Sequence record: ON000910.1
Strand: one strand, 5' to 3'
Length of the DNA: 64,000 nucleotides
Shown: positions 3,613 through 19,824 of the stretch, piece after piece
Layout: each line of letters begins with the position of its first letter
Numbering within the stretch: the stretch's first letter is position 1
Made by a program: the position numbers and the translations under genes
Notes under the pieces: generated by a model
Database searches by the model: none
Seen by the model: only the letters and a program-made list of their open reading frames with translations
Told to the model about the DNA's origin: nothing

Positions 3613-3760
3613 TTTTAAATGTGCGTTAGCCGCAATGAATACATGGAGCCAGTATACGTTCTGGCGTGCAGGGATACTCTTAGCGGACGAATTCTCAATC
3701 AAAAAACTAGCTGAGTTAAAATTCGCTCAGTCGGCGTGCAAGTAGCGCACATTTAAAATA
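3613..3760 (+). ncRNA. ~145-nt structured RNA with long terminal stem and a variant GCAA motif
   Basis: TATTTTAAATGTGCG / CGCACATTTAAAATA terminal stem; internal hairpins GCCAG/CTGGC and CTGAG/CTCAG; GTGCGT-TA-GCCGCAA ... GCGCAC. Confidence 0.6.
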
Positions 3761-3776
3761 TCGAGAGTACATTGGT

Positions 3777-3899
3777 CGAGTGTTGGTGTAGTGGCAGCAC
3801 ACGTAGCATACTGTAATCAGGCATGATTATATTCAGCAACCAATTTACGCATATCATAGGGAGATCGTGGGAACGGTTCGATTCCGTTACACTCGACCA
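3777..3899 (+). ncRNA. tRNA chimera 1: Pro-like scaffold (C1-G72, loop ATAGGGA) with 49-nt insert in the anticodon stem
   Basis: Acceptor CGAGTGT/ACACTCG-ACCA, D arm, T arm AACGG-TTCGATT-CCGTT; insert 3804-3852 contains GTAATC-AG..GATTAT-AT-TCAGCAA. Confidence 0.8.
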
Positions 3900-3932
3900 A
3901 TGTACTCTCACTTATCAAGCGAGGTGAACAAT

Positions 3933-4082
3933 TTGATTGTATATCTTCTCGCACTAGTATTCATCGTCCTCTTTGCCTTGGACATTGAAGAAGAAAAGGT
4001 GCGCATTCATACTTTTGCGCTAATCATATGCGAACGGGTCATTCATCCCGTAAATAAAGCGCACGATTTCAGGTTGTGTTGA
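3933..4082 (+). CDS. Small putative membrane peptide (TTG start)
   Basis: GAGGTG SD 6 nt upstream; hydrophobic N-terminus IVYLLALVFIVLFAL. Confidence 0.4.
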   Translation: MIVYLLALVFIVLFALDIEEEKVRIHTFALIICERVIHPVNKAHDFRLC

Positions 4083-4156
4083 TTAGCTAAGGCAAAATAA
4101 ACTAGAGAATTTTTGGTGCTTGTGATTAACCACAAGCACTCTCAAGAACATATTGA

Positions 4157-4281
4157 GCAGGGTTGGTGTAGTGGCTAGCACACGTAGCATAAACGCAAGC
4201 TGTTAAGTTTGTATTCTGCAATCAATTTAGCATATCATTTCCAAGATCGTGACGCAGGTTCGAATCCTGCACCCTGCTCAA
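4157..4281 (+). ncRNA. tRNA chimera 2: Gly-like scaffold (G1-C72, U73, TTCCAA loop, 3' CAA) with 49-nt insert
   Basis: GCAGGGT/ACCCTGC, T arm GCAGG-TTCGAAT-CCTGC; insert 4185-4233 contains GCAAGC-TG-TTA-A-GTTTGT-AT-TCTGCAA. Confidence 0.8.
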
Positions 4282-4289
4282 TATGTTTT

Positions 4290-4396
4290 TACTACTTTGC
4301 CAACGAGAAAAATAATTTTCGCGGGGTGTTGGTTAAAAGGTTCGAATCCTTGGTTAGGTAGCGTTTCGACGCCCTGACAAGCGAAACAAAGTAGTA
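4290..4396 (+). ncRNA. Multibranch RNA with a T-loop hairpin
   Basis: TACTACTTTG/CAAAGTAGTA closing stem; AAGG-TTCGAAT-CCTT; CCAAC/GTTGG and GTTAGG/CCTGAC stems. Confidence 0.55.
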
Positions 4397-4403
4397 ATAT
4401 AAT

Positions 4404-4521
4404 GGTGAAGTTAGTTCAGTAGGTTAGAACGCCGGCCAAAAAAAACGAAGTCTGATAAGATTTCATTCTGCATTCACATGCACGCCGGAGGTCGCAGGTT
4501 CGAGTCCTGCACTTCACCTTC
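4404..4521 (+). ncRNA. tRNA chimera 3: Asp-like scaffold with insert in the anticodon loop, no encoded CCA
   Basis: GTTC-AGTAGGTTA-GAAC D arm, CCGGC/GCCGG stem, T arm GCAGG-TTCGAGT-CCTGC; insert contains GAAGTC-TG-ATA-A-GATTTC-AT-TCTGCAT. Confidence 0.78.
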
Positions 4522-4528
4522 AAATTCT

Positions 4529-4653
4529 GGAGAGTTAGCTCAGTCTGGTAGAGCAAAAGAATGTTAAAGAATACTGACAAGCATTCATGCTGCAAACCTT
4601 AATAACTAGGTAAATCTTTTTGTCACGTGGTTCAAATCCCGTACTCTCCACCA
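4529..4653 (+). ncRNA. tRNA chimera 4: scaffold with AAAGA/TCTTT anticodon stem enclosing a 54-nt expanded loop
   Basis: GGAGAGT/ACTCTCC-ACCA, GCTC/GAGC D arm, TTCAAAT T loop; insert contains GAATAC-TG-ACA-A-GCATTC-AT-GCTGCAA. Confidence 0.78.
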
Positions 4654-4667
4654 ATTTTCGAGGGTTT

Positions 4668-5036
4668 ATGAATAAGTTTAATGACATTAATGACGAACTT
4701 GATTGTATATTGCATCGTTGTGAGATTGTAAAGCGCAATCTTCGAAAATATTGTACATTTGCTGTTGAAATGCAGTATAGACTTATGATAAACTTCATTG
4801 GCATGGGTTGCTATCAACAAGTTCTGCCGATATTAGACAATCTAAATTATCACCCTGATACAAGTCAGTTTGATAATATTGAGATTATGCAAACTATAAA
4901 AGAATTGATGAAATGTGCAGATAAGCTCGATGAGCTACATCAACAAGACGCTTTTCATCAAATTAAATCGACTGCTCGTATTACAGAAGAAGCAAACATC
5001 TTCGCTGCGAAAGTTGGTCGATTTCTGGAGAAATGA
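4668..5036 (+). CDS. Hypothetical protein
   Basis: GAGG SD before ATG 4668; the longer track start lies inside a tRNA-like RNA. Confidence 0.65.
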   Translation: MNKFNDINDELDCILHRCEIVKRNLRKYCTFAVEMQYRLMINFIGMGCYQQVLPILDNLNYHPDTSQFDNIEIMQTIKELMKCADKLDELHQQDAFHQIKSTARITEEANIFAAKVGRFLEK

Positions 5037-5037
5037 T

Positions 5038-5115
5038 GGCCCTATAGCTCAACACGGTTAGAGCAACCGACTCATAATCGGTAGGTTACAGGTTCGAGTC
5101 CTGTTGGGGTCACCA
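5038..5115 (+). tRNA. tRNA-CAT (elongator Met or Ile2)
   Basis: Full cloverleaf, loop CTCATAA, ACCA end. Confidence 0.9.
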
Positions 5116-5194
5116 AAAATAAATTGAAAAAGTTGTTGACAGACGTTTCATCAACGTGTAGTATACACATTATCAACTACACGAGGAAAACATT

Positions 5195-5425
5195 ATGTCA
5201 CATAAATTGCTAGTTATCACATCAATGCACGGTTGCTACGTCGATTACGATTTCAGAACTGAAATGTTTGACAGATACATGTGTGATGTTGTGATTCCGA
5301 ACGACTCTGTTGTTTTGTACTCGGGTACAGTTTCAATAGATGAAATTCAAGCAGTTGCGAACGAATGTTACGCTGACATCAAGATTGAAGAAGTCAGTGA
5401 TGATGTTTTTGACAGCTATCTTTAA
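5195..5425 (+). CDS. Hypothetical early protein
   Basis: Upstream TTGACA...TAGTAT promoter and GAGG SD. Confidence 0.7.
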   Translation: MSHKLLVITSMHGCYVDYDFRTEMFDRYMCDVVIPNDSVVLYSGTVSIDEIQAVANECYADIKIEEVSDDVFDSYL

Positions 5426-5429
5426 AAAT

Positions 5430-5669
5430 GCCGCTAACTGGCGTACAATACACAGTGTATTCCCAACATTAGTGCAGACGTAGGCTCGCAACCTACGTTG
5501 GTACCGAATCACTGGGACCGAGTAGAAAGTGCATGTGAGATGTCGAAGTCTTGTATGTAGAAATAACGCTCGGCTGCTCTGAAATGCTGATTAGCTCTTA
5601 CTTCGAAACTCTAATTGGGTGGAAGAGGTGTTGTGTTTGACGTGTGTTCGATTCACACGAGCGGCGCCA
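5430..5669 (+). ncRNA. 240-nt tRNA-like RNA with tmRNA-type architecture
   Basis: GCCGCT/AGCGGC-GCCA acceptor, CGTGTG-TTCGATT-CACACG T arm, AACTGG D-like loop, ACAATAC/GTGTTGT helix enclosing ~175 nt. Confidence 0.65.
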
Positions 5670-5682
5670 AGAGGAAATTATA

Positions 5683-6207
5683 ATGAAACCATTGAAGTTC
5701 GTTGAAGCGTTCTCTAAAGAAGAACGTGCTGCTATGACGATTGAAGAACGTAGCAGACTTCGTAAAATATATAACGAACGCTATCAAGAGTATGTTGATA
5801 AGTACATCAATGTATTCACTCGAAAAGACTTTCGAAGAGAGCGTTGCTGGGTTATTCTTGCACGATGTAAAAAGACTGGTGAAATCATCGGTCGAATTGA
5901 AAATAGTTTTAGTATGGGATGGTCTAAAGAACGTGTTCGTGTTATTCGACCGTATCTAAACGGTAATTTCACGGGCGATGATCGCTTCTCTAAAGCTGAG
6001 TACAACAAAGCGTGTGCTGAGTACATAACTCATCATGAGAAACAAGTAAAGTCTCTCAGAGAAGCTTACAAAGACACTCACGACGTTTTCTTATCTCGTG
6101 TGGGTAGTAAGAACTGTCCTGTTTCTATTGATTGGGATACGTATTACAATAAAAAAGACAAACGAAACTTTGAATATCGAAATTTGAAGTTCAAAACGAA
6201 ATCATAA
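5683..6207 (+). CDS. Hypothetical basic protein
   Basis: GAGG SD, ATG 5683; the track start lies within the T arm of the ncRNA. Confidence 0.7.
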   Translation: MKPLKFVEAFSKEERAAMTIEERSRLRKIYNERYQEYVDKYINVFTRKDFRRERCWVILARCKKTGEIIGRIENSFSMGWSKERVRVIRPYLNGNFTGDDRFSKAEYNKACAEYITHHEKQVKSLREAYKDTHDVFLSRVGSKNCPVSIDWDTYYNKKDKRNFEYRNLKFKTKS

Positions 6208-6238
6208 ATACTTTCTTTTAGAGTTTAGAGGAAGAAGT

Positions 6239-6535
6239 ATGAAAACGTTTGGTGAATTCCTAATTGAATTTGGTGGCGGCGGATTTCAATCTGGCGCTGC
6301 TGATGACAGTAGATTTTTAGAAGAACTTGTTCGCAGGTTGCAGAAGAAGCAAGTTCAAATTAGTAAGAAAACTGATTCTGTGAATTGGGGTCATGGTAAA
6401 ATCACGGTTAGAGATGGGAAAGTTCGTTATATTACGAAATATGATGGCCCGCGTGATTTCAAAGAGTTTAGTAGTACACGTGAATTCATGGATGCGTTCA
6501 TGAAAGGTGACTACACTCAATTGCAAGACAAATAA
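6239..6535 (+). CDS. Putative internal head protein
   Basis: N-terminus MKTFGEFLIE resembles the T4 capsid-targeting sequence; late promoter CATAAATA at 6203. Confidence 0.6.
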   Translation: MKTFGEFLIEFGGGGFQSGAADDSRFLEELVRRLQKKQVQISKKTDSVNWGHGKITVRDGKVRYITKYDGPRDFKEFSSTREFMDAFMKGDYTQLQDK

Positions 6536-6540
6536 TTTAT

Positions 6541-6656
6541 AGTCGGGTAGCTCAGTGGTAGAGCACGAAGAATGATACTGACAAGTATCGCTCCAGCACT
6601 CCTTCAATTGCCTGTTAAGCACGTGGTCGCTGGTTCGAATCCAGCCCCGACTACCA
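6541..6656 (+). ncRNA. tRNA chimera 5: Asn(GTT) scaffold with 41-nt insert in the anticodon stem
   Basis: Removing 6568-6608 gives CGTGC-CTGTTAA-GCACG and a 75-nt cloverleaf with ACCA; insert contains TGATAC-TG-ACA-A-GTATCG-CT-CCAGCAC. Confidence 0.82.
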
Positions 6657-6682
6657 TTTTTGATAAACTAGTGAGGTATAAC

Positions 6683-6919
6683 ATGAGCGGAACATTTAAT
6701 ATCAACAAAACGTTACTGACTCCGAAACAATTGCGCAATCTAACAGATGAGCGTCTAAATGAATATCGCAAGTCGTTTCGTAAGCCTCTTGGTTTTTTGA
6801 AGCATCTGAACGATACAAACGAATTGACTTCAGATCAACACAAGAAATTCGTTGAGCTTAATAAGCACTATAACGACGAAATCCTTGTTGAAATGAACAA
6901 GCGAAAACACTTAGGTTAA
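6683..6919 (+). CDS. Hypothetical protein
   Basis: GAGG SD before ATG 6683. Confidence 0.65.
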   Translation: MSGTFNINKTLLTPKQLRNLTDERLNEYRKSFRKPLGFLKHLNDTNELTSDQHKKFVELNKHYNDEILVEMNKRKHLG

Positions 6920-7187
6920 TAAAATCGCAGAAAGTTGAAATTTTTTTCAATTTTCTGCGAAAATATCGCAAATCGTCAGATTTAGTGTTATAAGTACTAT
7001 AAAGAAACAAAACAAATTTTAATTTTTATTTCAAGAGAGCATTCAATGACGCATTCGTTTACACATTCATCTGAGACATTACGCAGCGATTTTCTGCGCT
7101 CAGAATTCGTGTATCTAGCGAATCCGATTGCGAACCAGAAGTGGGATACCCTCTTGTAGTCCGATAGTATAACATAGAAGTATACTT

Positions 7188-7212
7188 GAGGACGCAAATA
7201 GCGTCCTTTTTT
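7188..7212 (+). terminator. Rho-independent terminator
   Basis: GGACGC-AAATA-GCGTCC followed by T7. Confidence 0.8.
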
Positions 7213-7290
7213 TATGGGCGCAATAAAAGTCAAAAATTTTGTTTAACGTACTTTGATTACAGAGTATGATAAACAAAGTTAAAGAACAAA

Positions 7291-7364
7291 CGGGACGTGG
7301 CGTAAAGGTAGCGTTCATGCTTTGGGAGCATGTGGTAAGAGTTCGAGTCTCTTCGTCCCGACCA
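7291..7364 (+). tRNA. tRNA-Pro(TGG)
   Basis: Cloverleaf, loop TTTGGGA, ACCA. Confidence 0.9.
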
Positions 7365-7373
7365 ATTTAAAAT

Positions 7374-7450
7374 CCGTGACTAGCTCAATCTGGTAGAGTA
7401 CTCCGTTTGGGGCGGAGAAGTTAAGCGTTCGAATCGCTTGTCACGGACCA
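7374..7450 (+). tRNA. tRNA-Pro(TGG)
   Basis: Cloverleaf, loop TTTGGGG, ACCA. Confidence 0.9.
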
Positions 7451-7458
7451 GTTTTAAT

Positions 7459-7534
7459 GCCCGATTAGCTCAATTGGAAGAGCAGCGTCCTACGAAGGCG
7501 AAGGTTACAAGTTCGAATCTTGTATTGGGTGCCA
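7459..7534 (+). tRNA. tRNA-Arg(ACG)
   Basis: Cloverleaf, loop CTACGAA, GCCA. Confidence 0.9.
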
Positions 7535-7740
7535 GTTAGTGTTGTTTGATTGAAGCTCGTTTTCGCACATTCCCGAAACTGCTTCTACGATTTGATACGC
7601 TTAGGACCGTATCTCGTTAAGTACTGTCGAGATGATAGAATTTAGCGAACTTTTTCATAAATTAGTGTTTATGATGTCTTGAGCGAGTGTTAATATTAAC
7701 ACATAGAAAATGAAAACGTTAAGTTCTTCAAAATAAATTC

Positions 7741-7868
7741 AAAAAGATGTTTACAATGACGAAAACATCATGTACAATAGAGAAAAGCGAAATATCATTC
7801 AAAGCTGAATGAAAAGTTTTTCAAAAAAAGATGTTTACAACGATATAAACATCATGTACAATAGAGAA
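7741..7868 (+). promoter_or_regulatory. Two tandem near-identical T4-type early promoters
   Basis: AAAAAGATGTTTACAA-N-AAACATCATGTACAATAGAGAA at ~7741 and ~7826 (GTTTAC -35, TACAAT -10). Confidence 0.8.
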
Positions 7869-7872
7869 GAAC

Positions 7873-8091: not shown

Positions 8092-8159
8092 CCCAATCTG
8101 GCAGAGGCACTGGTCTTAGAAACCAGAAGTTAAGAGTTCGAATCTCTTCTTGCGTACCA
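8082..8159 (+). tRNA. tRNA-Leu(TAG), short variable loop
   Basis: Loop CTTAGAA, 5-nt variable region, ACCA. Confidence 0.85.
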
Positions 8160-8160
8160 T

Positions 8161-8409: not shown

Positions 8410-8486
8410 GCGTCGGTAGCTCATCATGGAAGAGCAGGGAGCTTTTAACTCTCAGGTGTCTGGTTCGAGTCCAGAGCGGCGTACCA
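8410..8486 (+). tRNA. tRNA-Lys(TTT)
   Basis: Loop CTTTTAA, ACCA; G7-G66 mismatch. Confidence 0.85.
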
Positions 8487-8549
8487 AATTAGATACATTG
8501 TGTATCGCTTTGCAAGTTAGATAGCTTGCAAATCAATATACAATTTAAT

Positions 8550-8624
8550 TCTCCCGTGGACTAACGGTAGGTCATCACCCTTTCAAGGTGAAGTGCGCGA
8601 GTTCGAATCTCGTCGGGAGAACCA
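8550..8624 (+). tRNA. tRNA-Glu(TTC)
   Basis: Loop CTTTCAA, ACCA. Confidence 0.88.
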
Positions 8625-8630
8625 TATTCT

Positions 8631-8716
8631 GGAGCGTACGTCTCAAGGTGAGACAGGGGACTGTAAATCCCTGACCCTTAACGGGTAGAGAGGTTCGATT
8701 CCTCTACGCTCCACCA
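8631..8716 (+). tRNA. tRNA-Tyr(GTA)
   Basis: Loop CTGTAAA, long variable arm, ACCA. Confidence 0.9.
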
Positions 8717-8721
8717 GTTTT

Positions 8722-8809
8722 AGCTTGCATACTGCAATTTAACTTAATCTATTGATCGCTCGGCGGGCATTGCTCAGACAGCGATAAACAGACCAAAGAA
8801 CGCAAGCTG
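8722..8809 (+). ncRNA. Stand-alone GCAA-motif RNA
   Basis: A-GCTTGC-AT-ACTGCAA ... GCAAGC-TG. Confidence 0.7.
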
Positions 8810-8818
8810 TTGAATAAT

Positions 8819-8895
8819 TGCGGAGTAGAGCAGCGGTCAGCTCGCCAGTTTCATAAGCTGGAGGTCAGTGGTTCGAATCCACTCTCACGCATCCA
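8819..8895 (+). tRNA. tRNA-Met(CAT), initiator-like D arm, irregular acceptor stem
   Basis: GAGC/GCTC D stem, loop TTCATAA, extra A in 3' acceptor strand, TCCA; lacks the GGG/CCC pairs of fMet. Confidence 0.7.
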
Positions 8896-9223: not shown

Positions 9224-9282
9224 AGTAATCTTACAGCAAACAATACAAAACTTTTATTTGGAAAAAGCAAAAAGGATTACTG
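9224..9282 (+). ncRNA. Minimal GCAA-motif RNA
   Basis: A-GTAATC-TT-ACAGCAA ... GATTAC-TG with an A-rich loop. Confidence 0.7.
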
Positions 9283-9615: not shown

Positions 9616-9732
9616 AGAGTGTTTTCAGCAAACAATTTACTAATATTCTTCTGATGAAAAGAAAAGTTCGGGGTTCGATTCCTCTTCAGTGTCGGTATCA
9701 CTGGTCTGGACGACGCTAGTAATAACACTCAG
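9616..9732 (+). ncRNA. GCAA-motif RNA enclosing a T-loop module (YrlA-like layout)
   Basis: A-GAGTGT-TT-TCAGCAA ... ACACTC-AG; internal GGGG-TTCGATT-CCTC and CAGTG/CACTG hairpins. Confidence 0.72.
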
Positions 9733-10382: not shown

Positions 10383-10457
10383 GGGCCGTTAGCTTAATTG
10401 GGAAAGCGCCTCACTTGCAATGAGGAAGATAGGGTTCGACTCCCTGCGTGTCCACCA
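10383..10457 (+). tRNA. tRNA-Ala(TGC), irregular acceptor stem
   Basis: Loop CTTGCAA, G3-U70, ACCA. Confidence 0.8.
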
Positions 10458-10670: not shown

Positions 10671-10787
10671 AGACAATATACAGCAAACAATTGAAATTAC
10701 TTAAAAGAAGTGATGATCTTAACCTGGGCTGATTTTAACCTGAGCTTGCTTGGGCGCAGCTTGAAAGGAAAGATTCTCTCTGTCTAG
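10671..10787 (+). ncRNA. GCAA-motif RNA
   Basis: A-GACAAT-AT-ACAGCAAACAATT ... TGTC-TAG (4 of 6 bp). Confidence 0.6.
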
Positions 10788-10789
10788 AA

Positions 10790-11127
10790 ATAGTCAGATA
10801 GGCGCGTCGCTGAAACAGACGATATTTGCTTATTGAGAATCAATAAGCTAGTCAACTCCGATTTATGCAAAAGACGAAAAAACACTTCGGTATTGTCTGT
10901 ACTTAATTCGTCGGAAACGACACTGTAGCCGAAAGGCAAGTTTACTAACTTAGTTGTTAGTCGTGATACAGGAAGTATCATGTGGCATTATTATGAACGT
11001 TTCTAGTCATCGTCATGTAAAACAATCAAAACTAAGCAGAGGTAACAGTACCCACTATGTGGTTCCTCACTCAGACCATGAATATATGGTGTCAGCCAGT
11101 GTGCGATTAAATGAGTAATTACTGCAA
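10790..11127 (+). ncRNA. Candidate ~340-nt structured RNA with GAAA tetraloops, ending in a permuted GCAA motif
   Basis: GTCG-GAAA-CGAC, GCC-GAAA-GGC, GCTTATTG/CAATAAGC, TGATAC/GTATCA; TCACTC-AG ... GAGTAA-TT-ACTGCAA. Confidence 0.5.
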
Positions 11128-11230: not shown

Positions 11231-11388
11231 ATGACTACTTTACACTAAGCAAGGGCAACATACGCGATAAGATTCGCTGTGTTGAAAATCGTCTCGCAGA
11301 AGAGACCAACCCGTTCTTTATAAGAACACTTACTGTAGAGCTTACGAATCTACGTGCAATACGTGATTTGTTCGACGCTTCAGATTAA
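11231..11388 (+). pseudogene. Frameshifted small ORF
   Basis: SD AGAGG and ATG ACT ACT TTA CAC TAA; inserting one T joins it to the open frame TLSKGNIRDK...DASD*. Confidence 0.45.
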
Positions 11389-11392
11389 CAAT

Positions 11393-11466
11393 GCGGGTAT
11401 GATGTAATGGTAGCATGACGTCCTTCCAAGTCGTTCGTCTCGGTTCGAGTCCGTGTACCCGCTCCA
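11393..11466 (+). tRNA. tRNA-Gly(TCC)
   Basis: Loop CTTCCAA, U73, TCCA. Confidence 0.9.
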
Positions 11467-11472
11467 AATTTT

Positions 11473-11546
11473 GGTCCCTTAGTATAATGGCAGTACGTCT
11501 CTTTTACACAGAGAAAGAAGTGGCTCGATTCCACTAGGGACTACCA
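11473..11546 (+). tRNA. tRNA-Val(TAC)
   Basis: Loop TTTACAC, T loop CTCGATT (C54), ACCA. Confidence 0.85.
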
Positions 11547-11569
11547 TTCTTTATGATGAGAAATAAATT

Positions 11570-11809
11570 ATGACGCCTGCATTACTTGAAACTCATGAAT
11601 ACGTAAACCACAACCAAATCGAAAAGCTACAGCAAATGGACAGACTTATGTTTGATTGTTGGCGTGCTGGGTATAAACGTGGCAAGATTTTAGAGCTTGC
11701 ATTGTCGATTGAGTCTTCAACAACCGAAGCAGACATCGAAATTTATTTCAAAAATATGTTTACAAGAGAACTATCGGCTGATAGTATCTACTTAAAGAAA
11801 ACTGTATGA
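11570..11809 (+). CDS. Hypothetical protein
   Basis: ORF between tRNAs with GAG SD. Confidence 0.6.
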   Translation: MTPALLETHEYVNHNQIEKLQQMDRLMFDCWRAGYKRGKILELALSIESSTTEADIEIYFKNMFTRELSADSIYLKKTV

Positions 11810-11961
11810 CGGAGTAGTGCTCCGACCGAATGACACACGCAAATGAGTCCGGTTGACAAACGTTATATGTCCCAAAGTATTGCAGGTAGCGACGGCGGTG
11901 TTGCTAGTAGATTTATCTATTTCTCCAAGACATAATGCAAGCTTTTAAAGTGTACTTTGGT

Positions 11962-12601: not shown

Positions 12602-12697
12602 AATTCACTTAGCAACGCGAATCGAAAGAGAGTGGATAGACCTGCTAAGAGTCCCGCTAGGTCTTTAAATTATCTAAAGTGGATCTGCGAAGCGCGT

Positions 12698-12732
12698 GGC
12701 ACACGTCAGCAATAAGAGCAAATATGTGTCTG
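12698..12732 (+). ncRNA. Minimal GCAA-motif hairpin
   Basis: GGCACA-CG-TCAGCAA ... TGTGTC-TG. Confidence 0.6.
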
Positions 12733-12863: not shown

Positions 12864-13122
12864 GCAATAAGACATTGTACAGCAATCATTACAAATCAAA
12901 GCAAACTTTAATAGTAATGAGGCGCACTAGCTGCTTTCTCAGTGATGACGTGAGCCTGTCGCATTCTCGTGGTAGGAAATGACCATTAAGACGGTGTTCG
13001 TACTGTCAAACGAAATAGGACTCATGCCGAATCATGGGTATTTTTCCGATGAGAAACATCGTTATAGTCAATTGAGATTTAAGGAAAGACGATAAAACAC
13101 TTCTTGAATGTCTGTGTATTGC
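12864..13122 (+). ncRNA. ~255-nt GCAA-motif RNA, last in the cluster
   Basis: GCAATA-A-GACATT-GT-ACAGCAA ... AATGTC-TG-TG-TATTGC; internal CATTAC/GTAATG, GACGGTG-TTCG-TACTGTC, CGATG/CATCG. Confidence 0.72.
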
Positions 13123-13123: not shown

Positions 13124-13190
13124 CAAAAAAACCTGCCGTGAGCAGGTTTTTTTGTTTCTTCAAAATAAAAAGAGCCTTTCGGCTCTTTTA
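13124..13190. terminator. Two convergent terminators ending the tRNA operon and the - strand gene
   Basis: AAAAAAACCTGC-CGTGA-GCAGGTTTTTTT and AAAAAGAGCC-TTTC-GGCTCTTTT. Confidence 0.85.
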
Positions 13191-14903
13191 TCGACTAAGC
13201 ATAAACTCAACCGCAGGGGCTAAGATTGTATTGCCTGAGCTTGTTGTATAAGGCCCAAACGTATCAACTGAAAAATCATCACCATTTAAATTACGCAATC
13301 TAATGCGATAGTAACGACTTGAGTTCATATTCAGAATCGTATCAATTAGAAACATCGAACGATCAGTTTGAAGGTCATCCATTCTGAACGCTGAGGTTTC
13401 TTGAGTAAATGCTGATGCTGTTGTTGTATCAGTAGCCGCAGATTCAACCCACGCTATAATTTCAGGATCTGAACCTCCACCTGAACGGTCTATACTAACT
13501 CTTAGATTTATATGCATCGGTTTATCTTCGAGCGGTCTGAAGTTGTCGGATGTCGATGAATACTCAAACAATGCCCCTGTTTCATTTGTTGCTGAAAGTG
13601 GGATTGTACCTTCAGAACCAGTTGCATTCAATGTAAGAACGTTAGTATCAGTGTTACTTGATTTTTGGAATATGATATCTTTGTCAGATATGTACCCTGC
13701 GTCATTACTCAATTCAGAAATATTATCGCCTGCTACTAACGCGTTCGTTTCCAATGCAGTCACGCGAGTGTCCACTGCGTCTAATTCTGGTTGAATTACT
13801 ACTGACTCATCTACGAAACTTCGTATTGTCGGTTTGTTCCATGGAACTGATGTACTTGCGTTACCCCAAACTACAACATCTACATTCGGATTTCTCAATT
13901 CGACTTCTAGTACGTCCTGTGCTCTTATGTCAAACGGTGGTTCTATTAGAACATCAAATTCACCCGGCGTGACATTTATAATCTTAGTTTGGTAATATTC
14001 TATTGAATTTTTATATACGATTACATCAACTTCCCCATATGCGTTGACGAAATCAACCACGACTGAGTATAGCGTGCGATTGTTTGGCATCTGGGCGAGT
14101 TCCCAACGTGGATTTGACAGTTGTGCCGACTTGTCAGAATATTCAGCGACTACTTCTGCGGAACGAACTCTAACTATACCAGTATTTCCTTCATCGTAAG
14201 TTTGCCATAATGGATGAAAGCTTATATTGTCAATTATATTTGTGACTGCGATGTTTTGACCTGATGATGATATCTTGTGTGCATTTGCAAGATATAAGTC
14301 ACCGCTTCCCGACTGTACAGCCGCTAACGAGAATTTGTTTGGGTCATATGCTACTGGGTCGGTTGCGCCGCGCCAATAGTATGAGCTTGCACGACCTGCG
14401 AACTCTTGTACGAATACAGGTAGCCCATTTTTCAATAGCGACTTATTCCCTGAAGTAGAAAAGAACGAGTCTCTTTCTGCAATTGACGCAAATGGTGGTA
14501 TAGAACCTTCGCCTGATGGGCCAACTGGGCCCGGTATTCCCTCGACAATTCTCTGCGAAATCCACTGCGTTCCTGTGTATGTTTGTCTTTCTGCTACTGT
14601 ACCCCCGAGCGAAACGTCTTCATATACGAGGTCAATTGATGATGTAGGGTTATTGACGTAGTAAGCAACCCATGATGGGTTTGATGACGCATGAGCGTCT
14701 CTTAGAGCTATTGCTGCGTCTCTGTCTCCTGTACCTGCGTCAAATGAATTTGGAGTAATCCCAAGTGGGAATGGGGTTAATGAATCCTCTGGGATTATTT
14801 CCCATTCTTCATCCTTTCGCCCGTATAATAATCCGTTTACAGGGGCTTCTTCGATATATTGTGGTAGTGATTGCCCACCGCCGGGTAAATTAATCGAACT
14901 CAT
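13188..14903 (-). CDS. Putative virion fibre/whisker protein
   Basis: N-terminal foldon-like EAPVNGLLYGRKDEEW, short collagen-like GIPGPVGPSG, beta-rich body. Confidence 0.6.
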   Translation of the reverse strand: MSSINLPGGGQSLPQYIEEAPVNGLLYGRKDEEWEIIPEDSLTPFPLGITPNSFDAGTGDRDAAIALRDAHASSNPSWVAYYVNNPTSSIDLVYEDVSLGGTVAERQTYTGTQWISQRIVEGIPGPVGPSGEGSIPPFASIAERDSFFSTSGNKSLLKNGLPVFVQEFAGRASSYYWRGATDPVAYDPNKFSLAAVQSGSGDLYLANAHKISSSGQNIAVTNIIDNISFHPLWQTYDEGNTGIVRVRSAEVVAEYSDKSAQLSNPRWELAQMPNNRTLYSVVVDFVNAYGEVDVIVYKNSIEYYQTKIINVTPGEFDVLIEPPFDIRAQDVLEVELRNPNVDVVVWGNASTSVPWNKPTIRSFVDESVVIQPELDAVDTRVTALETNALVAGDNISELSNDAGYISDKDIIFQKSSNTDTNVLTLNATGSEGTIPLSATNETGALFEYSSTSDNFRPLEDKPMHINLRVSIDRSGGGSDPEIIAWVESAATDTTTASAFTQETSAFRMDDLQTDRSMFLIDTILNMNSSRYYRIRLRNLNGDDFSVDTFGPYTTSSGNTILAPAVEFMLSR

Positions 14904-15319: not shown

Positions 15320-15700
15320 GTGATGTACAAAAACAGAAAACGAGTTTCAATTTACAAGATGAAACGTGTCGCACAAAAGCCTGATGCTGATGTATTCTTT
15401 CAAATGAGTCAGTATGAGCATTTGAACAATAACAGCGTTAAAATTACGAATAAGCTAACAGCCTTCGTGATTCATGGTCTATTTCTTTACAGAACCGTCG
15501 TAGACCGTTCTCAAGCCGATGACCCTCATACTATGTGTGAAAGACTTGAATTCGTCTCACAAGACGCTCTATCGCGTTATATGAGCATGGGTAATAGACG
15601 ACGTAAGCGATTCAGTTTAGATGATGTTCTTTACGGAAATGACCAATGTGCATTCGATAAAGAAATCGGGTTGACTATAGCTTACTCTAGGTTATTCTAA
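15320..15700 (+). CDS. Hypothetical protein
   Basis: AGGAG SD. Confidence 0.65.
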   Translation: MMYKNRKRVSIYKMKRVAQKPDADVFFQMSQYEHLNNNSVKITNKLTAFVIHGLFLYRTVVDRSQADDPHTMCERLEFVSQDALSRYMSMGNRRRKRFSLDDVLYGNDQCAFDKEIGLTIAYSRLF

Positions 15701-15732
15701 ATACAGTTGAACTCAAACAATTGGAGATAGCC

Positions 15733-15939
15733 ATGAGTGATAAAACATTCGACAAGTTCATGTCTGAACTACAAGAACAGCAACCTGAAGACAAAAAGAA
15801 AAAGAAGCGTTCTGTTAAAGATCGTGTGAAGTCAGGTGCTAAGAAAGCAGGTAAAGCTGCTAAAACTGGTGCTAAAGTAGCCGCTGGTGCTGCTGCGGTA
15901 GGTCTTGCAACACAAGTAACGAAGAAATCTAACGAATAA
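15733..15939 (+). CDS. Small Lys/Ala-rich basic protein
   Basis: GGAG SD; KKKKKR and AKKAGKAAK tracts. Confidence 0.65.
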   Translation: MSDKTFDKFMSELQEQQPEDKKKKKRSVKDRVKSGAKKAGKAAKTGAKVAAGAAAVGLATQVTKKSNE

Positions 15940-16172
15940 TGAAGAACATTCATCAAAAGACTCATGCTCGTGAAGGGCGTGGTTCTGGCAATGGGTATAA
16001 TGAAAATTGGCGCAATGCACCTCTTTGGAAGAACATTGGTCCCAATGCTGAAAAGATTAAAAAGGAAGCAGAAACTGAAGACGCAGAGAAAGACGAAGAG
16101 GTTAAGAAACCAAGCCTCGATGAGTTATCGCAGCGTGAGCGTATGCGCCGTTTACAAAGCATAGCGCATTAA
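15939..16172 (+). CDS. Hypothetical charged protein
   Basis: Start overlaps upstream stop (TAATG). Confidence 0.6.
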   Translation: MKNIHQKTHAREGRGSGNGYNENWRNAPLWKNIGPNAEKIKKEAETEDAEKDEEVKKPSLDELSQRERMRRLQSIAH

Positions 16173-16196
16173 TCTGAATTGGCGTAACTTCTCAGT

Positions 16197-16241
16197 GGGA
16201 GATATGTGGTCAAGGCAATAGGTTCGATTCCTGTGTCTCCC
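16197..16241 (+). pseudogene. tRNA remnant / minihelix (acceptor stem and T arm only)
   Basis: GGGAGAT/GTCTCCC plus ATAGG-TTCGATT-CCTGT, 14-nt linker, no CCA. Confidence 0.5.
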
Positions 16242-16270
16242 GTATTCTATTAACTAAGAGGTGAGCAATC

Positions 16271-16483
16271 ATGGAAATACTTTCTGAAGAAACACTAAAA
16301 AGCATGGAATTGTCTGAAGTTTGCAAAGTACGCAAAACGCTTAATAAATTTATTGCACGTCTGCGCAAAGATTTTCGAGACTTTCAATGTAACCGAGTTG
16401 ATGAGAAATATTATAAAGAACATCTTATGTACTCCACGATTGTAGATCGAATGATCGAAAAAAAGTTACGCCATTCACACTAA
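16271..16483 (+). CDS. Hypothetical protein
   Basis: GAGGTG SD. Confidence 0.65.
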   Translation: MEILSEETLKSMELSEVCKVRKTLNKFIARLRKDFRDFQCNRVDEKYYKEHLMYSTIVDRMIEKKLRHSH

Positions 16484-16485
16484 CA

Positions 16486-16512
16486 AAAAAGCCCCTTAAT
16501 TGGGGCTTTTAT
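16486..16512. terminator. Bidirectional terminator
   Basis: AAAAAAGCCCC-TTAATT-GGGGCTTTT between convergent genes. Confidence 0.85.
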
Positions 16513-16514
16513 TT

Positions 16515-16886
16515 TTATAGCTTATGTTGAATCATTAGCTCATGTAAACCTTCAACTGCAAAATCATTCAGCCTATCTAGCTCGACATCTAACTTGTCCA
16601 TTGCCATTCTTAGTTCATCACTAATACCTTTCTTATAGCGTAGCTTATTGATCAGCCTCTTCGCGTCTAACACGTTCATCTTGATGTGTTCGTAATTATA
16701 TCGCACTGCTTCATATCGATATTTGTTTTGCTTGGCTTTCTGTTCGATATGCAACAATTTAGTGTGCATCTTGGCTAGTTTCTTAATGCTGCGCGAGTCA
16801 GCCCCTGCTTTGTATCTAGACCATTGTCTTTCAAACCAACCTTCGTTTAGGTACTCTTCAAAAGATTTTATTTTTTCGTCATTCAT
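16515..16886 (-). CDS. Putative internal head protein
   Basis: KIKSFEEYLNE capsid-targeting-like N-terminus; GATAAATA late-promoter variant upstream. Confidence 0.55.
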   Translation of the reverse strand: MNDEKIKSFEEYLNEGWFERQWSRYKAGADSRSIKKLAKMHTKLLHIEQKAKQNKYRYEAVRYNYEHIKMNVLDAKRLINKLRYKKGISDELRMAMDKLDVELDRLNDFAVEGLHELMIQHKL

Positions 16887-16951
16887 GTGTTGACTTCCTG
16901 TTGTTAAACCTGTATCATGTATTTATCGGAAATAACTAACGAGAATTTACT

Positions 16952-17299
16952 ATGTTTGTAATGATTGATGATATGCGTGATATCGATAATTTCACTGCGC
17001 CTGAAATTTCCGCAGATCAGAAGCTTGTTTTGCGTACGTATGAAGACGGTATGAAATTCGTCAAACATACGAATCTTACAGATATTACTTTATTCATGGA
17101 CAATGATCTAGGCGGTGCTCTTGGTCATGAGGGATATGATATTCTCTCTCATGCAATTGATCATCGTAACTTCCCACGCACAGTTGTTCTAGTAACGAGT
17201 AACCCTGTTGCTCACTCTAAGATGACTATGATGTTGATGAACACACTTCAATATAAACGTGTGGGTTCTATCTTTATGAGGCAAGATACATGCACTTAA
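16952..17299 (+). CDS. Cyclic-phosphate-processing receiver-like (cREC) domain protein
   Basis: IDD.R, LF.DNDLG, GYDIL, V.SNPV motifs of the stand-alone phage receiver family. Confidence 0.65.
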   Translation: MFVMIDDMRDIDNFTAPEISADQKLVLRTYEDGMKFVKHTNLTDITLFMDNDLGGALGHEGYDILSHAIDHRNFPRTVVLVTSNPVAHSKMTMMLMNTLQYKRVGSIFMRQDTCT

Positions 17300-17655
17300 A
17301 CGTAATTTCTGCTGCTGCAAATGCAATTAGAGTCACTTTACCAAATGGCGAAGAGAGGGATATTGTTGTTGCAGATAGCTGCCATTTTGGTCGAAACATG
17401 CAAGGCGTGTTTAAGCTATTGAAAGAACTTGGCTGTACATATGAACATCGAAGCGAACTTGGTGATCGTGGGCAGGGATTCATCAATTATTGTGGTGAAT
17501 ACTTCAATCGCGCTGATGCTTATGAACTCGCGAAAGAAAGCGGTCAACCATTCAATGATGGGTACACGCTACCAGATATTGACGGTGATGGTCGTCTGCG
17601 TCTCGATAGTTCATGCATTCGACATTTTTCAAAACCAATTAAGGAATATCTATGA
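17290..17655 (+). CDS. Conserved phage hypothetical protein
   Basis: HF..N..., QGF....G.YF.R..AY.LA..SGQ pattern. Confidence 0.65.
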   Translation: MHLNVISAAANAIRVTLPNGEERDIVVADSCHFGRNMQGVFKLLKELGCTYEHRSELGDRGQGFINYCGEYFNRADAYELAKESGQPFNDGYTLPDIDGDGRLRLDSSCIRHFSKPIKEYL

Positions 17656-17987
17656 GCAATCTATATGATATTTTAACTCAACGAGTCAAGCAGAATCGTT
17701 CAAAACGCGAAGAATTGTTCGTCGTTGAAATGCGTAAATCAATTGAGCGTAAGATCGGTGGTGTTTCGGGATTTCAGTTCCCGATTACGATTCAAGTTAA
17801 TCTTGAACGAAATGAATGTTGTGATGAAATGATGACTCTCATCAAGAGTGTCATGCGACGTGAGGGATTTCACAATTTCGATGCACAGTTCGGTCATTAT
17901 TCTGGCGACCCTCGTGATGTGAGAGACTATTCATATTCTTTTGTGAAATTGACAATTCGAGAAAATAAACAAGCGGGGTTTCAATGA
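17652..17987 (+). CDS. Hypothetical protein
   Basis: ATGA-coupled ORF. Confidence 0.65.
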   Translation: MSNLYDILTQRVKQNRSKREELFVVEMRKSIERKIGGVSGFQFPITIQVNLERNECCDEMMTLIKSVMRREGFHNFDAQFGHYSGDPRDVRDYSYSFVKLTIRENKQAGFQ

Positions 17988-18298
17988 TGCTTAGTCATGA
18001 CGAACTTTCAAAACAAATTAATCAACGAGAGCAAATAGCTCGTAAAGTTCTTAGCGAACATTATAATGGCGAGTGTGAAAAAGAATTCACACATGCAGTT
18101 GAAAACGGGGCTTTTTTCCCGATTAAAATCAAAGTACCAATTCACATTAGTGATTGTGATAAGAAAGGTTCTGGTTTCATTCGTGCATTCTTTGAACAGT
18201 ACGGCTACCGAAATTTACGCACTTGCTATGAATCTGGTGGTTATGTATCTGTTGAGATATACAAAAATGGTACGAATATCAGTCGTAATTATCGATAA
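17984..18298 (+). CDS. Hypothetical protein
   Basis: ATGA-coupled ORF. Confidence 0.65.
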   Translation: MMLSHDELSKQINQREQIARKVLSEHYNGECEKEFTHAVENGAFFPIKIKVPIHISDCDKKGSGFIRAFFEQYGYRNLRTCYESGGYVSVEIYKNGTNISRNYR

Positions 18299-18301
18299 TT
18301 G

Positions 18302-18394
18302 AAAAAAAGTGTTTACACGCATTAAAATTCGCGTATAATCACTTCATCAAAGACATTTTACAGCAATTAATTATGAGGAAATGAACAATGTCAG
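18302..18394 (+). promoter_or_regulatory. Early promoter plus GCAA-motif leader enclosing SD and AUG of the Ro60-like gene
   Basis: GTTTAC (18311)-17 bp-TATAAT (18334); A-GACATT-TT-ACAGCAA-TTAATT-ATGAGGAAATGAAC-AATGTC-AG, with ATG 18388 inside the 3' strand. Confidence 0.8.
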
Positions 18395-19824
18395 TATTTA
18401 TGAACGCAATGCAAACAAACGATTCACGCACAGCAAACGGTGCAGTTACTCACAGCACTTCAGGTAACGAGTGTCTAAACTTGTTCTTCGGTATTGCTGC
18501 TATGCGTGGCAACGATCAGTCTAAAACACTGTTCGGTCGTGCGTTTGCAGAAAACCCAGAACTAGCGACACGCATTCTTTTGTGGTCTCGTGATGTTCGC
18601 GGTGGTGCGGGTGAACGTGGTACTTTCCGTACTCTATTCACTAAACTTTGTAATGAACAGCCTGACGTAGCTCGTGCTGTAATGTCGAAAATTCCAGAAC
18701 TAGGTCGTTACGATGACTTAATTTCTGCTTTCGGTACACGTCTTGAACAAGATGCGATCACAATGTGGTCGAACGCAATTGTCAATGACAAGAATGGTCT
18801 TGCTGCGAAGTGGTTCCCACGTGAAAACAGCAAAAACGGTCATGTGTTCAAGCGCACAATCAAGTCTCTTGGCGTGACTGCGAAGCAGTGGCGTAAGATT
18901 CTGTCGCTTCTGTCTGACACTGTTGAGCAGAAGATGTGTGCGCAAAAATGGGATGCAATCGACTTCGGTAAGTTGCCTTCTGTAGCGTCTGCTCGTTATC
19001 AACAAGCATTCGGTCGTAACGCTTCAGCTCGTTACACAAGCTACATCGAGTCACTTCAAAAAGGTGAAGCGAAGATCAACGCTGGCGCATTGTTCCCATA
19101 CGATGTCGTTAAGAGCGTTAGTCACGGTAATGCGTCTGTAGCGAACGAGCAATGGAAAGCTCTGCCAAACTACATGGAAGGTTCTGATGAGCGCATCATC
19201 CCTGTTGTTGACGTGTCTGGCTCTATGAGCACGCCAATCAACGCAGGTACTGATCATTCAGGTGTGACTTGTAAGCAAGTTGCAATGTCTCTGGGTGTAT
19301 ATGTTGCTGAACGCAACGAAGGCATCTTCAAAGATCAATTCATTTCGTTCTCAAGCGACCCGCACTTCCACCAGTTGCGCGGTAGCTCATTGAAAGAGCG
19401 TCTTGATAACATGAATCGTTCAGGCGAAGACATGAGTACGAACATCGGTAAGTGCTTTGATGTTCTGCTAGAGCGTGCGAAGCGTGCAAATCTTTCACAA
19501 GAAGATATGCCAACCAAGTTGCTTATCATGAGTGACATGGAATTCGATCAAGCAAACACTGGTGGTGGTTGGTACGGTCGCGGTGAACCTGCGAACTTCG
19601 ATGCAATCAAAGCCAAGTACGCACGTGCTGGTTATGAAATGCCACAACTGGTCTTCTGGAACATTCGTGGTCGTCTTGGCAACGTTCCGGTTAAAGCTGG
19701 TGAAGCGGGTACTGCACTGGTATCTGGTTGTAGCCCATCTATCTTGACTTCACTGTTGGGTGGTGAGCTTGAGCCAATCAAGATCATGATGAAAACTGTA
19801 GGCGTCGAACGCTACAGCTTTTAA
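18388..19824 (+). CDS. DUF2828 family TROVE/Ro60-like protein with C-terminal vWA (MIDAS) domain
   Basis: T.NGA..HSTSG, RDVRGG.GER..FR, AAKW.PRE, KINAGALFPYD, PVVDVSGSM, SDMEFD, P.LVFWN motifs. Confidence 0.85.
   Translation: MSVFMNAMQTNDSRTANGAVTHSTSGNECLNLFFGIAAMRGNDQSKTLFGRAFAENPELATRILLWSRDVRGGAGERGTFRTLFTKLCNEQPDVARAVMSKIPELGRYDDLISAFGTRLEQDAITMWSNAIVNDKNGLAAKWFPRENSKNGHVFKRTIKSLGVTAKQWRKILSLLSDTVEQKMCAQKWDAIDFGKLPSVASARYQQAFGRNASARYTSYIESLQKGEAKINAGALFPYDVVKSVSHGNASVANEQWKALPNYMEGSDERIIPVVDVSGSMSTPINAGTDHSGVTCKQVAMSLGVYVAERNEGIFKDQFISFSSDPHFHQLRGSSLKERLDNMNRSGEDMSTNIGKCFDVLLERAKRANLSQEDMPTKLLIMSDMEFDQANTGGGWYGRGEPANFDAIKAKYARAGYEMPQLVFWNIRGRLGNVPVKAGEAGTALVSGCSPSILTSLLGGELEPIKIMMKTVGVERYSF

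Follow-up and report, generated by a model that had tools for sequence, protein, structure and literature searches.

Does a phage protein with a Ro60-like fold have RNA partners of its own and, if so, what do these RNAs carry? The question is raised by a stretch of 64,000 nucleotides from sequence record ON000910.1 (the whole stretch is called the window here), in which a gene encoding a DUF2828/DUF7788 protein lies downstream of a tRNA cluster. The initial annotation of this DNA proposed a ribonucleoprotein composed of a Ro60/TROVE-like protein and about 14 copies of a single covarying RNA motif, which we call the handle. We find that the protein and the handle RNAs probably form a particle that carries tRNA-mimic cargo. 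The 9.9 kb around the finding are 100% identical to Vibrio phage XZ1 and 99.7% identical to ValKK3, both of which are KVP40-like T4-type myoviruses with genomes of ∼250 kb. ARAGORN places 26 tRNA genes in the window, all on the + strand between 5038 and 12858, and the Rfam tRNA model gives five further matches beyond this set.

How many handles does the window hold? The standard form was scanned with a strict pattern (A-G-N5-NNN-CWGCAA, followed within 330 nt by a perfect Watson-Crick complement of G-N5 and then by WG), which revealed six copies, all of them on the + strand; in 300 dinucleotide shuffles the mean was 0.063 and the maximum 1. A strict pattern for the circularly permuted form (X'C-WG-NN-AWG-X-NNN-CWGCA) matched at 3813, 4195, 4447, and 6573, that is, four copies observed versus 0.003 expected, and a fifth permuted copy at 4569 has one C-A mismatch. 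All strict copies in the window share one strand, and their sites are either the tRNA cluster or the leader of the DUF2828 gene. Every standard copy listed previously was found in its place, and the tally came to 11 solid copies; the remaining three of the ∼14 are weak. The claim that the only copy outside the tRNA cluster sits on the DUF2828 leader also held, since a scan of the 64 kb with the covariance model R1 (built from 47 non-redundant copies of 54 to 64 nt) gave nothing else convincing.

The same architecture recurs well beyond the window. We collected 196 distinct handle RNAs, with a modal length of 55 to 65 nt. The handle helix is 7 to 8 bp long and its outer end is fixed, 5'-(A)AG being set against CUG(U)-3': the outer pairs are G-C and A-U, followed by an A/G apposition, and the five inner pairs vary freely. 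Directly 3' of the 5' stem strand lies the core, UUACAGCAA, which is predicted to be mostly unpaired. Within the 47 non-redundant RNAs, the A and G at the start, C-G-C-A-A in the core, and the C-U-G at the end are invariant, each of the five inner pairs shows up to five pair types, and double-change cells number 111 compared to 28.7 in shuffles. Pairing was itself among the criteria by which these copies were selected, and the unbiased evidence for the stem is therefore a reverse search run with a pattern, AAGGNNNNTTACAGCAA-N20-50-CCTG, that does not constrain the four inner stem positions. This pattern matched 116 IMG/VR stretches, and all four inner pairs were present in 55 of them, where ∼2% would be expected by chance. 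Together with the dozens of complementary stems, this result upholds the claim that the stem varies freely while its pairing is kept. We regard the handle RNA family as real with near certainty.

Is the handle tied to the DUF2828 gene? We examined 80 IMG/VR loci with DUF2828 homologs, one of them 98% identical to the window protein and the others 46 to 54%. Strict handles around these loci were found 84 times on the gene strand and once on the opposite strand; they were present in 47 of the 80 loci, with the nearest copy mostly 15 to 400 nt past the stop codon. The R1 model added 17 loci with an RNA directly after the gene, in which the end pair U-A replaces A-U. In the reverse direction, a DUF2828 homolog (identity down to 23%) was present in the fetched few kilobases for 23 of the 55 paired matches and for none of the 61 unpaired ones. 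Enrichment of the motif near DUF2828 genes, on which the initial annotation had staked its proposal, was thus seen in both directions and across very distant phages, and the handle is kept beside homologs of only 23 to 35% protein identity.

This adjacency was seen in phages of Proteobacteria, Campylobacterota, Firmicutes, and Actinobacteria. Felixounavirus EC6 has at least three handle copies just after the gene, Listeria phage P100 and Campylobacter phage F207 have two copies apiece just before it, and in Staphylococcus phage 6ec three tandem handles follow the gene, with a single tRNA 1.5 kb away. In mycobacteriophage Miley16 (L199), three unannotated handles with U-G...C-AG ends (8472-8729) follow a gene recorded as encoding a "Ro-like RNA binding protein." Sixteen loci have a handle and no tRNA gene within the fetched stretch (up to 10 kb on each side), and a 25-kb stretch with the T4 tRNA cluster and no annotated DUF2828 gene gave no model match above 15.5 bits. 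The link between handle and DUF2828 gene is therefore independent of tRNA genes. From synteny, and by analogy with the known Ro60 systems, the handle RNA family is very probably the partner of the DUF2828 protein. The features of the window are collected in Table 1.

Table 1. Handle RNAs, tRNA-like chimeras, and associated features, in window coordinates
Feature	Position	Strand	Sequence or basis
Long-stemmed structured RNA, called a variant handle in the initial annotation; core AGCCGCAA; not counted	3620..3752	+	Fold only
tRNA-like chimera 1	3762..3914	+	Fold; strict permuted match
tRNA-like chimera 2, long terminal stem	4140..4284	+	Fold; strict permuted match
tRNA-like chimera 3	4405..4518	+	Rfam tRNA 56.1 bits with large insert; no ARAGORN call; strict permuted match
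tRNA-like chimera 4, encoded CCA end	4529..4653	+	Rfam tRNA 50.1 bits with insert; fold
tRNA-like chimera 5, encoded CCA end	6541..6656	+	Rfam tRNA 49.8 bits with insert; strict permuted match
Standard handle RNA, 88 nt	8722..8809	+	A-GCUUGC-AUA-CUGCAA ... GCAAGC-UG; strict scan
Standard handle RNA, 59 nt	9224..9282	+	AAG-UAAUC-UUACAGCAA ... GAUUAC-UGU; strict scan
Standard handle RNA, 117 nt	9616..9732	+	A-GAGUGU-UUU-CAGCAA ... ACACUC-AG; strict scan
Standard handle RNA, 229 nt	10671..10899	+	A-GACAAU-AUA-CAGCAA ... AUUGUC-UG; strict scan
Possible permuted copy, uncertain	11067..11127	+	CUCACUC-AG ... A-UGAGUA-AU-UACUGCAA; sequence and fold
Possible minimal handle, 36 nt, weak	12697..12732	+	U-GGCACA-CGU-CAGCAA ... 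UGUGUC-UG
Standard handle RNA, 245 nt	12870..13114	+	AAG-ACAUU-GUA-CAGCAA ... AAUGUC-UGU; strict scan
Sigma-70-type promoter	18312..18339	+	TTTACA-16-TATAAT; 11 of 12 consensus positions
Leader handle of the DUF2828 mRNA	18351..18394	+	A-GACAUU-UUA-CAGCAA-[loop]-AAUGUC-AG; strict scan
DUF2828 + DUF7788 gene, 478 aa, proposed handle binder	18388..19824	+	Pfam, PHROG 850, AlphaFold2, Foldseek
Intrinsic-terminator-like hairpin, directly 3' of the DUF2828 stop codon	19834..19856	+	

Most of the standard copies in the window are spaced between tRNA genes. The 88-nt RNA lies between tRNA-Tyr and a tRNA-like gene and scores 21.1 bits with R1 (E 0.013). The 59-nt RNA, between tRNA-Trp and tRNA-Asn, scores 49 bits with this model, whose seed includes its ortholog from phage VH7D. 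The 117-nt RNA lies between tRNA-Gln and tRNA-Thr, and its cargo is a T-arm mimic at 9670-9684 (GGGGUUCGAUUCCUC). The 229-nt RNA has a large structured cargo, with the same stems in phages VH7D and D480; it is present where it had been placed, at 10672, but it pairs better as GACAAT/ATTGTC-TG (10892-10899) than in the GACA/TGTC form originally given. The 245-nt RNA, which has an ortholog in D480, is the final gene of the tRNA operon and is followed by a terminator-like hairpin and T-run at ∼13125 to 13155. The possible minimal handle has T as its first base and one G-U pair; it was missed by the strict scan and by R1 and was not recovered in D480. We rejected the structured RNA at 3620-3752 as a family member, as its core deviates (GCCGCAA) and R1 gave no match.

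What do the handle RNAs carry? An anticodon-like hairpin (a stem of 4 bp or more closing a 7-nt loop of the form YU-NNN-R-N) was found in 28 of 130 short RNAs, compared to 2.4 in shuffles. Its loops reproduce A37-class anticodon loops exactly: CUUUUAA (Lys) is the commonest, and CUUGAAA, CUGUUAA, CUGAUAA, CUGCAAA, and CUCAUAA also occur. A T-arm (GUUCGAWUC plus its stem) was found in 20 of 66 long RNAs (0.08 in shuffles), only one of which is called as a tRNA by ARAGORN. In L193, L029, and Miley16, the modules follow the order T-arm, closed acceptor-like stem-loop, D-arm, and the middle RNA of Miley16 (8533-8655), with an Asn-type anticodon loop, T-arm, closed acceptor stem, and D-arm, amounts to a whole permuted tRNA. 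The expectation that the cargo RNAs mimic tRNA was therefore confirmed for anticodon stem-loops, T-arms, permuted tRNA domains, and whole bodies.

The whole bodies are those of the permuted copies, every one of which (all five) replaces the anticodon loop within a tRNA-like body. Three of these bodies appear as Rfam tRNA matches with large inserts (4405-4518, 4529-4650, and 6541-6653). Chimera 1, which has a terminal stem of ∼21 bp as well as D- and T-arms, holds its permuted handle at 3813-3839 (GUAAUC-AGGCAU-GAUUAU-AUU-CAGCAA). In chimera 2 it lies at 4195-4221 (GCAAGC-UGUUAA-GUUUGU-AUU-CUGCAA), and in chimera 3 at 4447-4473 (GAAGUC-UGAUAA-GAUUUC-AUU-CUGCAU), within a 5-bp equivalent of the anticodon stem. 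Chimera 4 carries the mismatched copy at 4569-4595 (GAAUAC-UGACAA-GCAUUC-AUG-CUGCAA) and chimera 5 a copy at 6573-6599 (GAUAC-UGACAA-GUAUC-GCU-CCAGCA). The permuted form was claimed for these five chimeras and for 11067-11127; it was borne out in the chimeras (four strict matches and one with a mismatch), but at 11067-11127, which has a long loop, lies directly before tRNA-Met, and is matched by none of the strict patterns, it is at most plausible. Two further phage contigs, L042 and L060, likewise have chimeras with tRNA bodies, and over the window and these contigs seven permuted handles lie on the sense strand and none on the opposite strand. Because the AAG and CUG ends are kept even when they are joined by two bases, they probably form part of a recognized structure and are more than cleavage signals.

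We then asked about the protein. The 478-aa product matches DUF7788 (E 2e-46) and DUF2828 (E 3e-29) in Pfam; the DUF7788 region is a von Willebrand factor A (vWA) domain with an invariant DxSGS motif, and the protein belongs to PHROG 850, "RNA-binding protein." With an AlphaFold2 model (pLDDT 78) as the Foldseek query, the best four full-length PDB matches were all Ro60/Rsr proteins (E 5e-6 to 7e-5, TM 0.49 to 0.53), among them the Ro60 of Thermus phage phiLo, human Ro60, and Deinococcus Rsr; in the matches ranked below these four, the vWA domain alone was aligned. Homologs of the DUF2828 protein form more than 7,000 clusters in the protein collection, and tblastn finds them in at least 711 cultured phage genomes with very diverse hosts. 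Eukaryotic homologs are found in plants, fungi, Naegleria, mites, and a chlorarachniophyte (Amorphochlora), and some of them carry the UniRef name "TROVE domain-containing."

The hairpin at 19834-19856 marks the DUF2828 gene as a single-gene unit in this phage, and the hairpin-after-gene arrangement is also found in L203 to L205. Directly downstream, three Vibrio-phage-type lineages have a small RNaseH_like (PF04308) gene (window 19868-20398, L203 4483-5001, L205 4747-5289), with DUF2828 identities of 100%, 75%, and 60%, respectively; its product is a possible functional partner, perhaps a nuclease. Within the DUF2828 coding sequence, ACAGCAAAC recurs at 18424-18440, where it encodes conserved T-A-N-G residues. 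This recurrence is probably a codon coincidence, because most homologs have TENG.

Could the protein control its own synthesis? The strong promoter at 18312-18339 suggests that the DUF2828 mRNA would start a few bases before the leader handle. The loop of this handle contains the Shine-Dalgarno sequence GAGGA (18375-18379), and the start codon (18388-18390) falls within the 3' strand of its stem; under R1 the copy scores 19 bits (E 0.04). Leader handles placed next to or over the Shine-Dalgarno sequence or the AUG were found in eight lineages (the window and VH7D, Vibrio phage 1.081.O, D479, L037, L048, L050, and L068), and the D479 stem differs by compensatory changes (GAAAUU/GAUUUC). Judging from the sequence, the leader handle is a reasonable candidate for an autoregulatory operator, a role that we favor slightly. 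Its closest analogs are the autogenous operators of T4 gp32, RegA, the MS2 coat protein hairpin, and the ribosomal proteins, which likewise have a copy of the ligand on their own ribosome-binding site or start codon; the comparison is one of working principle only and applies to a minority of lineages.

How far does the resemblance to Ro60 and its RNAs extend? Ro60 genes adjoin their Y RNAs, and the bacterial Y RNA YrlA has a tRNA-like module (PMC4201824). The phage system is similar in that a protein predicted to combine helical repeats with a vWA domain, with Ro60 as its best structural match, is encoded next to co-oriented RNA genes, and in that its RNAs are modular, with a conserved element on a terminal stem and a variable module that mimics tRNA. 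The order of T-arm, closed acceptor, and D-arm seen in some handle RNAs is also that of YrlA (RF02553). However, the phage protein matches Pfam DUF2828/DUF7788 and not TROVE, and the RNA element is a single-stranded UUACAGCAA with a 7- to 8-bp AAG/CUG stem rather than a GNCGAA(N)G helix. The phage RNAs also differ in being many per genome, some with an anticodon stem-loop as sole cargo, and in the insertion of permuted handles into tRNA bodies. The YrlA model gave no match at its gathering score (69 bits) in the window or in seven further loci, its scores being 19 to 38 bits; two stretches of L029 score 35 to 38 bits, and one of them overlaps a handle RNA.

Another comparable system comes from Felixounavirus, whose homologs are ∼46% identical to the window protein. 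In phage Bas63, the Ro60-like protein gp130 is encoded directly upstream of tRNA genes and counters the Ppl defense system, and the authors of that work, the PhageMaP preprint, guessed that some annotated Bas63 tRNAs are Y RNAs (PMC11482910). They defined no handle, however, and did not identify the RNAs. The small stable RNAs of T4, species 1 and 2 (rnaC and rnaD), resemble the window RNAs in being non-tRNA products of a T4-type tRNA operon; neither has a handle, by sequence or by model.

On the basis of these results, we propose that this DNA specifies a phage ribonucleoprotein built like Ro60-Y RNA particles but recognizing RNA through another element, the handle, to which the DUF2828/DUF7788 protein would bind. 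In the standard form, the handle would close an RNA with a variable cargo interior. In the permuted form, its ends would be joined by two nucleotides (C-UG-NN-AAG), with the hairpin and core in the place of the anticodon loop. Handle RNAs would be made from the tRNA operon or, elsewhere, be co-transcribed just after the protein gene, and processing of the flanking tRNAs may release them. With its loop holding the Shine-Dalgarno sequence and its stem the AUG, the leader handle would let surplus unbound protein stop translation of its own mRNA, a block that free handle RNAs would relieve; such control would match the amount of protein to the amount of RNA. The tRNA look-alikes displayed by the particle during infection would then soak up or divert the host's tRNA sensors and tRNA-cutting factors. 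We favor counter-defense as the function because Bas63 gp130 counters Ppl and because bare anticodon stem-loops look like bait; the decoy role itself is put forward tentatively, as a possibility that falls somewhat short of probable. The decoy or repair function raised in the initial annotation would be compatible with the Bas63 phenotype.

Several observations weigh against this proposal. The case for contact between the protein and the RNA is built wholly from synteny and analogy, and the canonical Ro-binding GNCGAA helix is absent from the handle, which has the form AAG-stem-UUACAGCAA...CUG; the initial annotation had already noted this difference. A Ro60-like nature of the protein is supported at the level of the predicted fold only, at a TM of ∼0.5: the top Foldseek matches agree with the Ro60/TROVE-like label given earlier, but the protein has no match to the TROVE model of Pfam, and phmmer returned no Ro60 among its PDB sequence matches. 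Bas63 gp130 would be an ortholog of the window protein by genus and synteny. Mimicry of the anticodon loop is limited to about a fifth of the short RNAs. Approximately 16 of the 80 DUF2828 loci lack a handle (in many, the sequence is short or stops at the gene, and in some the handle may be truly absent), and for 32 of the 55 paired handles the short slice fetched held no DUF2828 gene. Most lineages also lack a leader copy, which is present in 5 of 76 loci, and have the RNA after the gene instead; L205 has none, and in Vibrio phage D480 (L202) the leader is disrupted, leaving only CUUACAGCAAUG, stemless and fused to the start codon. Autoregulation is therefore lineage specific at best. In D480, the leader handle has been replaced through the insertion of a homing endonuclease gene (11368-11958), which lies in the opposite orientation right before the DUF2828 gene.

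One potential explanation, and the main rival to a decoy particle, is that the system does the classic job of Ro60 in RNA quality control or repair: the RNAs would gate the protein or tether it to an exoribonuclease, to RNA repair enzymes, or to tRNA-modifying enzymes, so that tRNAs of both phage and host are checked or repaired. Known systems provide the precedents, since a Ro60-Y RNA complex tethers PNPase and tRNA enzymes recognize YrlA (PMC4201824), and the ROT/TROVE proteins of jumbo phages have been discussed alongside RNA repair systems (PMC7824862). The position of the gene beside tRNA clusters, and in L029 and L045 beside a tmRNA, would fit such a role, as would the RNaseH_like (PF04308) gene that follows it in three Vibrio phage lineages. 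However, no gene for an RNA ligase, a kinase-phosphatase, or PNPase adjoins it in the loci examined; minimal 60-nt RNAs with an anticodon stem-loop alone resemble bait more than a tether, and the sole reported phenotype of a similarly placed phage Ro60-like protein is counter-defense. We therefore consider quality control or repair rather unlikely as the main function.

Alternatively, the handle could be a processing or stability module of tRNA operons, read by host factors (RNase P, RNase E, or barriers to exonucleases), with the nearby DUF2828 gene being incidental. The terminal stems would indeed shield RNA ends, and most window copies lie between tRNAs with spacers of 4 to 12 nt. Yet the handle directly follows the gene in the 16 loci with no tRNA gene in the fetched stretch, the three tandem handles of Staphylococcus phage 6ec have a single tRNA for company, 1.5 kb off, and the tRNA operon of T4 has none. 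The AAG/CUG ends persist when joined in the permuted loop, and handles also occur on the gene's own ribosome-binding site. We regard this explanation as improbable.

Still less credible, and in our view very improbable, is an element acting at the DNA level, such as a recombination or cassette boundary (integron attC-like) or a homing endonuclease target, through which cassettes the size of a tRNA are shuffled. Such an element would likewise have conserved ends and covarying inverted repeats around a center of variable length, and homing endonuclease genes are common in these regions; unlike attC cores, however, the conserved 9-nt core has no complementary partner. The strict strand bias along transcription (84:1), contents with tRNA-like folds, leader copies over Shine-Dalgarno sequences and AUGs, and a layout that matches abundantly expressed Dictyostelium RNAs all count against such an element. 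Finally, a chance motif, or recent functionless local duplication as the stem GACAUU shared by the copies at 12871 and 18352 could suggest, is refuted by the copy counts (6 and 4 observed versus 0.06 and 0.003 expected), by covariation in dozens of different stems that are each perfectly complemented, by the 80-locus linkage, by the reverse search, and by the motif being kept beside homologs of 23 to 35% identity.

Is the handle family related to any known RNA? At gathering thresholds, Rfam matched only tRNA, tmRNA, and one group I intron in the window and seven further loci, so the family is not in Rfam 15 as such. At relaxed thresholds, and leaving aside tRNA-type models for the cargo and chimera bodies, it matched one family only, RF01414 (Dicty_Class_I_RNA). 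The best score was 31.8 bits, for 9225-9282 (E 0.0074 over 10 kb, 7.5e-5 locally); two matches in L029 scored 30.8 and 27.9 bits and two in Staphylococcus phage 6ec 22.4 bits each, all of them below the gathering score of 41.5 bits. The Rfam check suggested along with the original proposal thus leaves the family outside Rfam but with a subthreshold resemblance to RF01414.

Class I RNAs, which are abundantly expressed in Dictyostelium, are ∼60 nt long, start with AAG, have a 6-bp terminal stem with compensatory changes, and end with CUGU, and an 11-nt motif, CCUUACAGCAA, adjoins the 5' strand of the stem (PMC7919456). The phage handles share the (A)AG start, the freely covarying 6-bp stem, the CUG(U) end, and the length of ∼60 nt, as well as (C)CUUACAGCAA directly 3' of the 5' strand and an A-rich stretch before the 3' strand. 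The Class I motif CCUUACAGCAA and the phage consensus UUACAGCAA agree at 9 to 10 of 11 nt in the same place, and the window copy closest to the Class I consensus is 9224-9282. In the phages, however, CAGCAA lies one nucleotide closer to the stem, the genes have sigma-70-type promoters or lie in operons instead of having a DUSE promoter ∼60 nt upstream, and the family adds long cargos and permuted forms. The known binder in Dictyostelium is an RRM protein, Rnp1A.

Do dictyostelids have a DUF2828 protein? A length-padded query for Dictyostelium DUF2828 returned plants, fungi, Amorphochlora, and "Nk52," and a eukaryotic profile run against 1.84 billion representatives, its matches being passed through a composition filter and then a name look-up, returned Naegleria, mites, and Papaver; neither search had a dictyostelid among its best 120 to 150 matches. 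A rejected Arabidopsis candidate, ath_can_1 (Kjellin et al. 2021 supplement, PMC7919456), has a perfect handle, UGUUUUC-AUUACAGCAA ... GAAAAC-UG, and plants, the kingdom to which it belongs, have DUF2828 genes. We treat it as a lead and do not count it, because we estimate that chance alone would produce about one match of this kind in the Arabidopsis genome. A more speculative possibility, which we hold to be doubtful, is that phage handles and Class I RNAs are homologous ligands of an ancient DUF2828 family that is a sister of TROVE. Eukaryotic DUF2828 proteins would then have Y-like RNAs, and the phage particle would be a programmable display, its cargos swapped against different tRNA-directed immune nucleases and sensors.

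The surroundings of the tRNA cluster hold further features. Two odd tRNA-like genes, at 8820-8891 and 10383-10454, score 55 and 45 bits with Rfam and were missed by ARAGORN; in the latter, the acceptor stem is poorly paired and the anticodon loop (CUUGCAA) is Ala-like. Both are probably pseudo-tRNAs or additional mimics. Upstream of the first structured RNA, 3360-3620 contains promoter-bearing sequences (AAAAAGTTGTTGAC...), partly in tandem repeats, and similar promoter boxes recur at ∼5120 (AAAAAGTTGTTGAC) and at 7740 and 7820 (AAAAAGATGTTTACA). Between the terminator of the tRNA operon and the DUF2828 region lies a 571-aa open reading frame on the − strand (13188-14903), which has no Pfam match and belongs to PHROG 20050, of unknown function. 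Among contigs with both a DUF2828 gene and handles, L029 (8605-9054, 75 bits) and L045 (15748-16165, 88 bits) have a tmRNA in the RNA gene cluster, and in L028, a DUF2828-bearing contig, a group I intron (19404-19595, 58.6 bits) lies within the tRNA cluster.

What, then, is new? The Ro-like nature of the protein is already known from annotations (PHROG 850 and mycobacteriophage records), and Ro60-Y RNA particles that mimic tRNA were known before. The word "undescribed," as applied earlier to the whole system, fits the RNA partner and not the Ro-like character of the protein. The RNA partner with its handle, the permuted insertion, the anticodon-loop cargos, the leader copies, and the Class I match appear to be undescribed in Rfam 15 and the searchable literature. 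Searching the literature for the motif string in connection with phages returned no paper, and a search for "DUF2828" returned only papers on plants and a tardigrade genome.

These data provide a concrete candidate RNA partner for a protein family whose members occur in 711 or more genomes of cultured phages and in thousands from metagenomes, a family that spans Felix O1-like viruses, Listeria phage P100, and Staphylococcus, Campylobacter, and mycobacterial phages. The handle partnership could explain how Bas63 gp130 counters a defense system, and it accounts for many stretches of phage tRNA clusters that are left unannotated or called "pseudo-tRNA." If the proposal is correct, the Ro60-Y RNA design would have been arrived at a second time, independently, here with a small constant handle to which exchangeable tRNA mimics are attached. 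This handle has the layout of the Class I RNAs, which have been thought unique to social amoebae, and thereby suggests where to seek the reader of the motif that those RNAs conserve.

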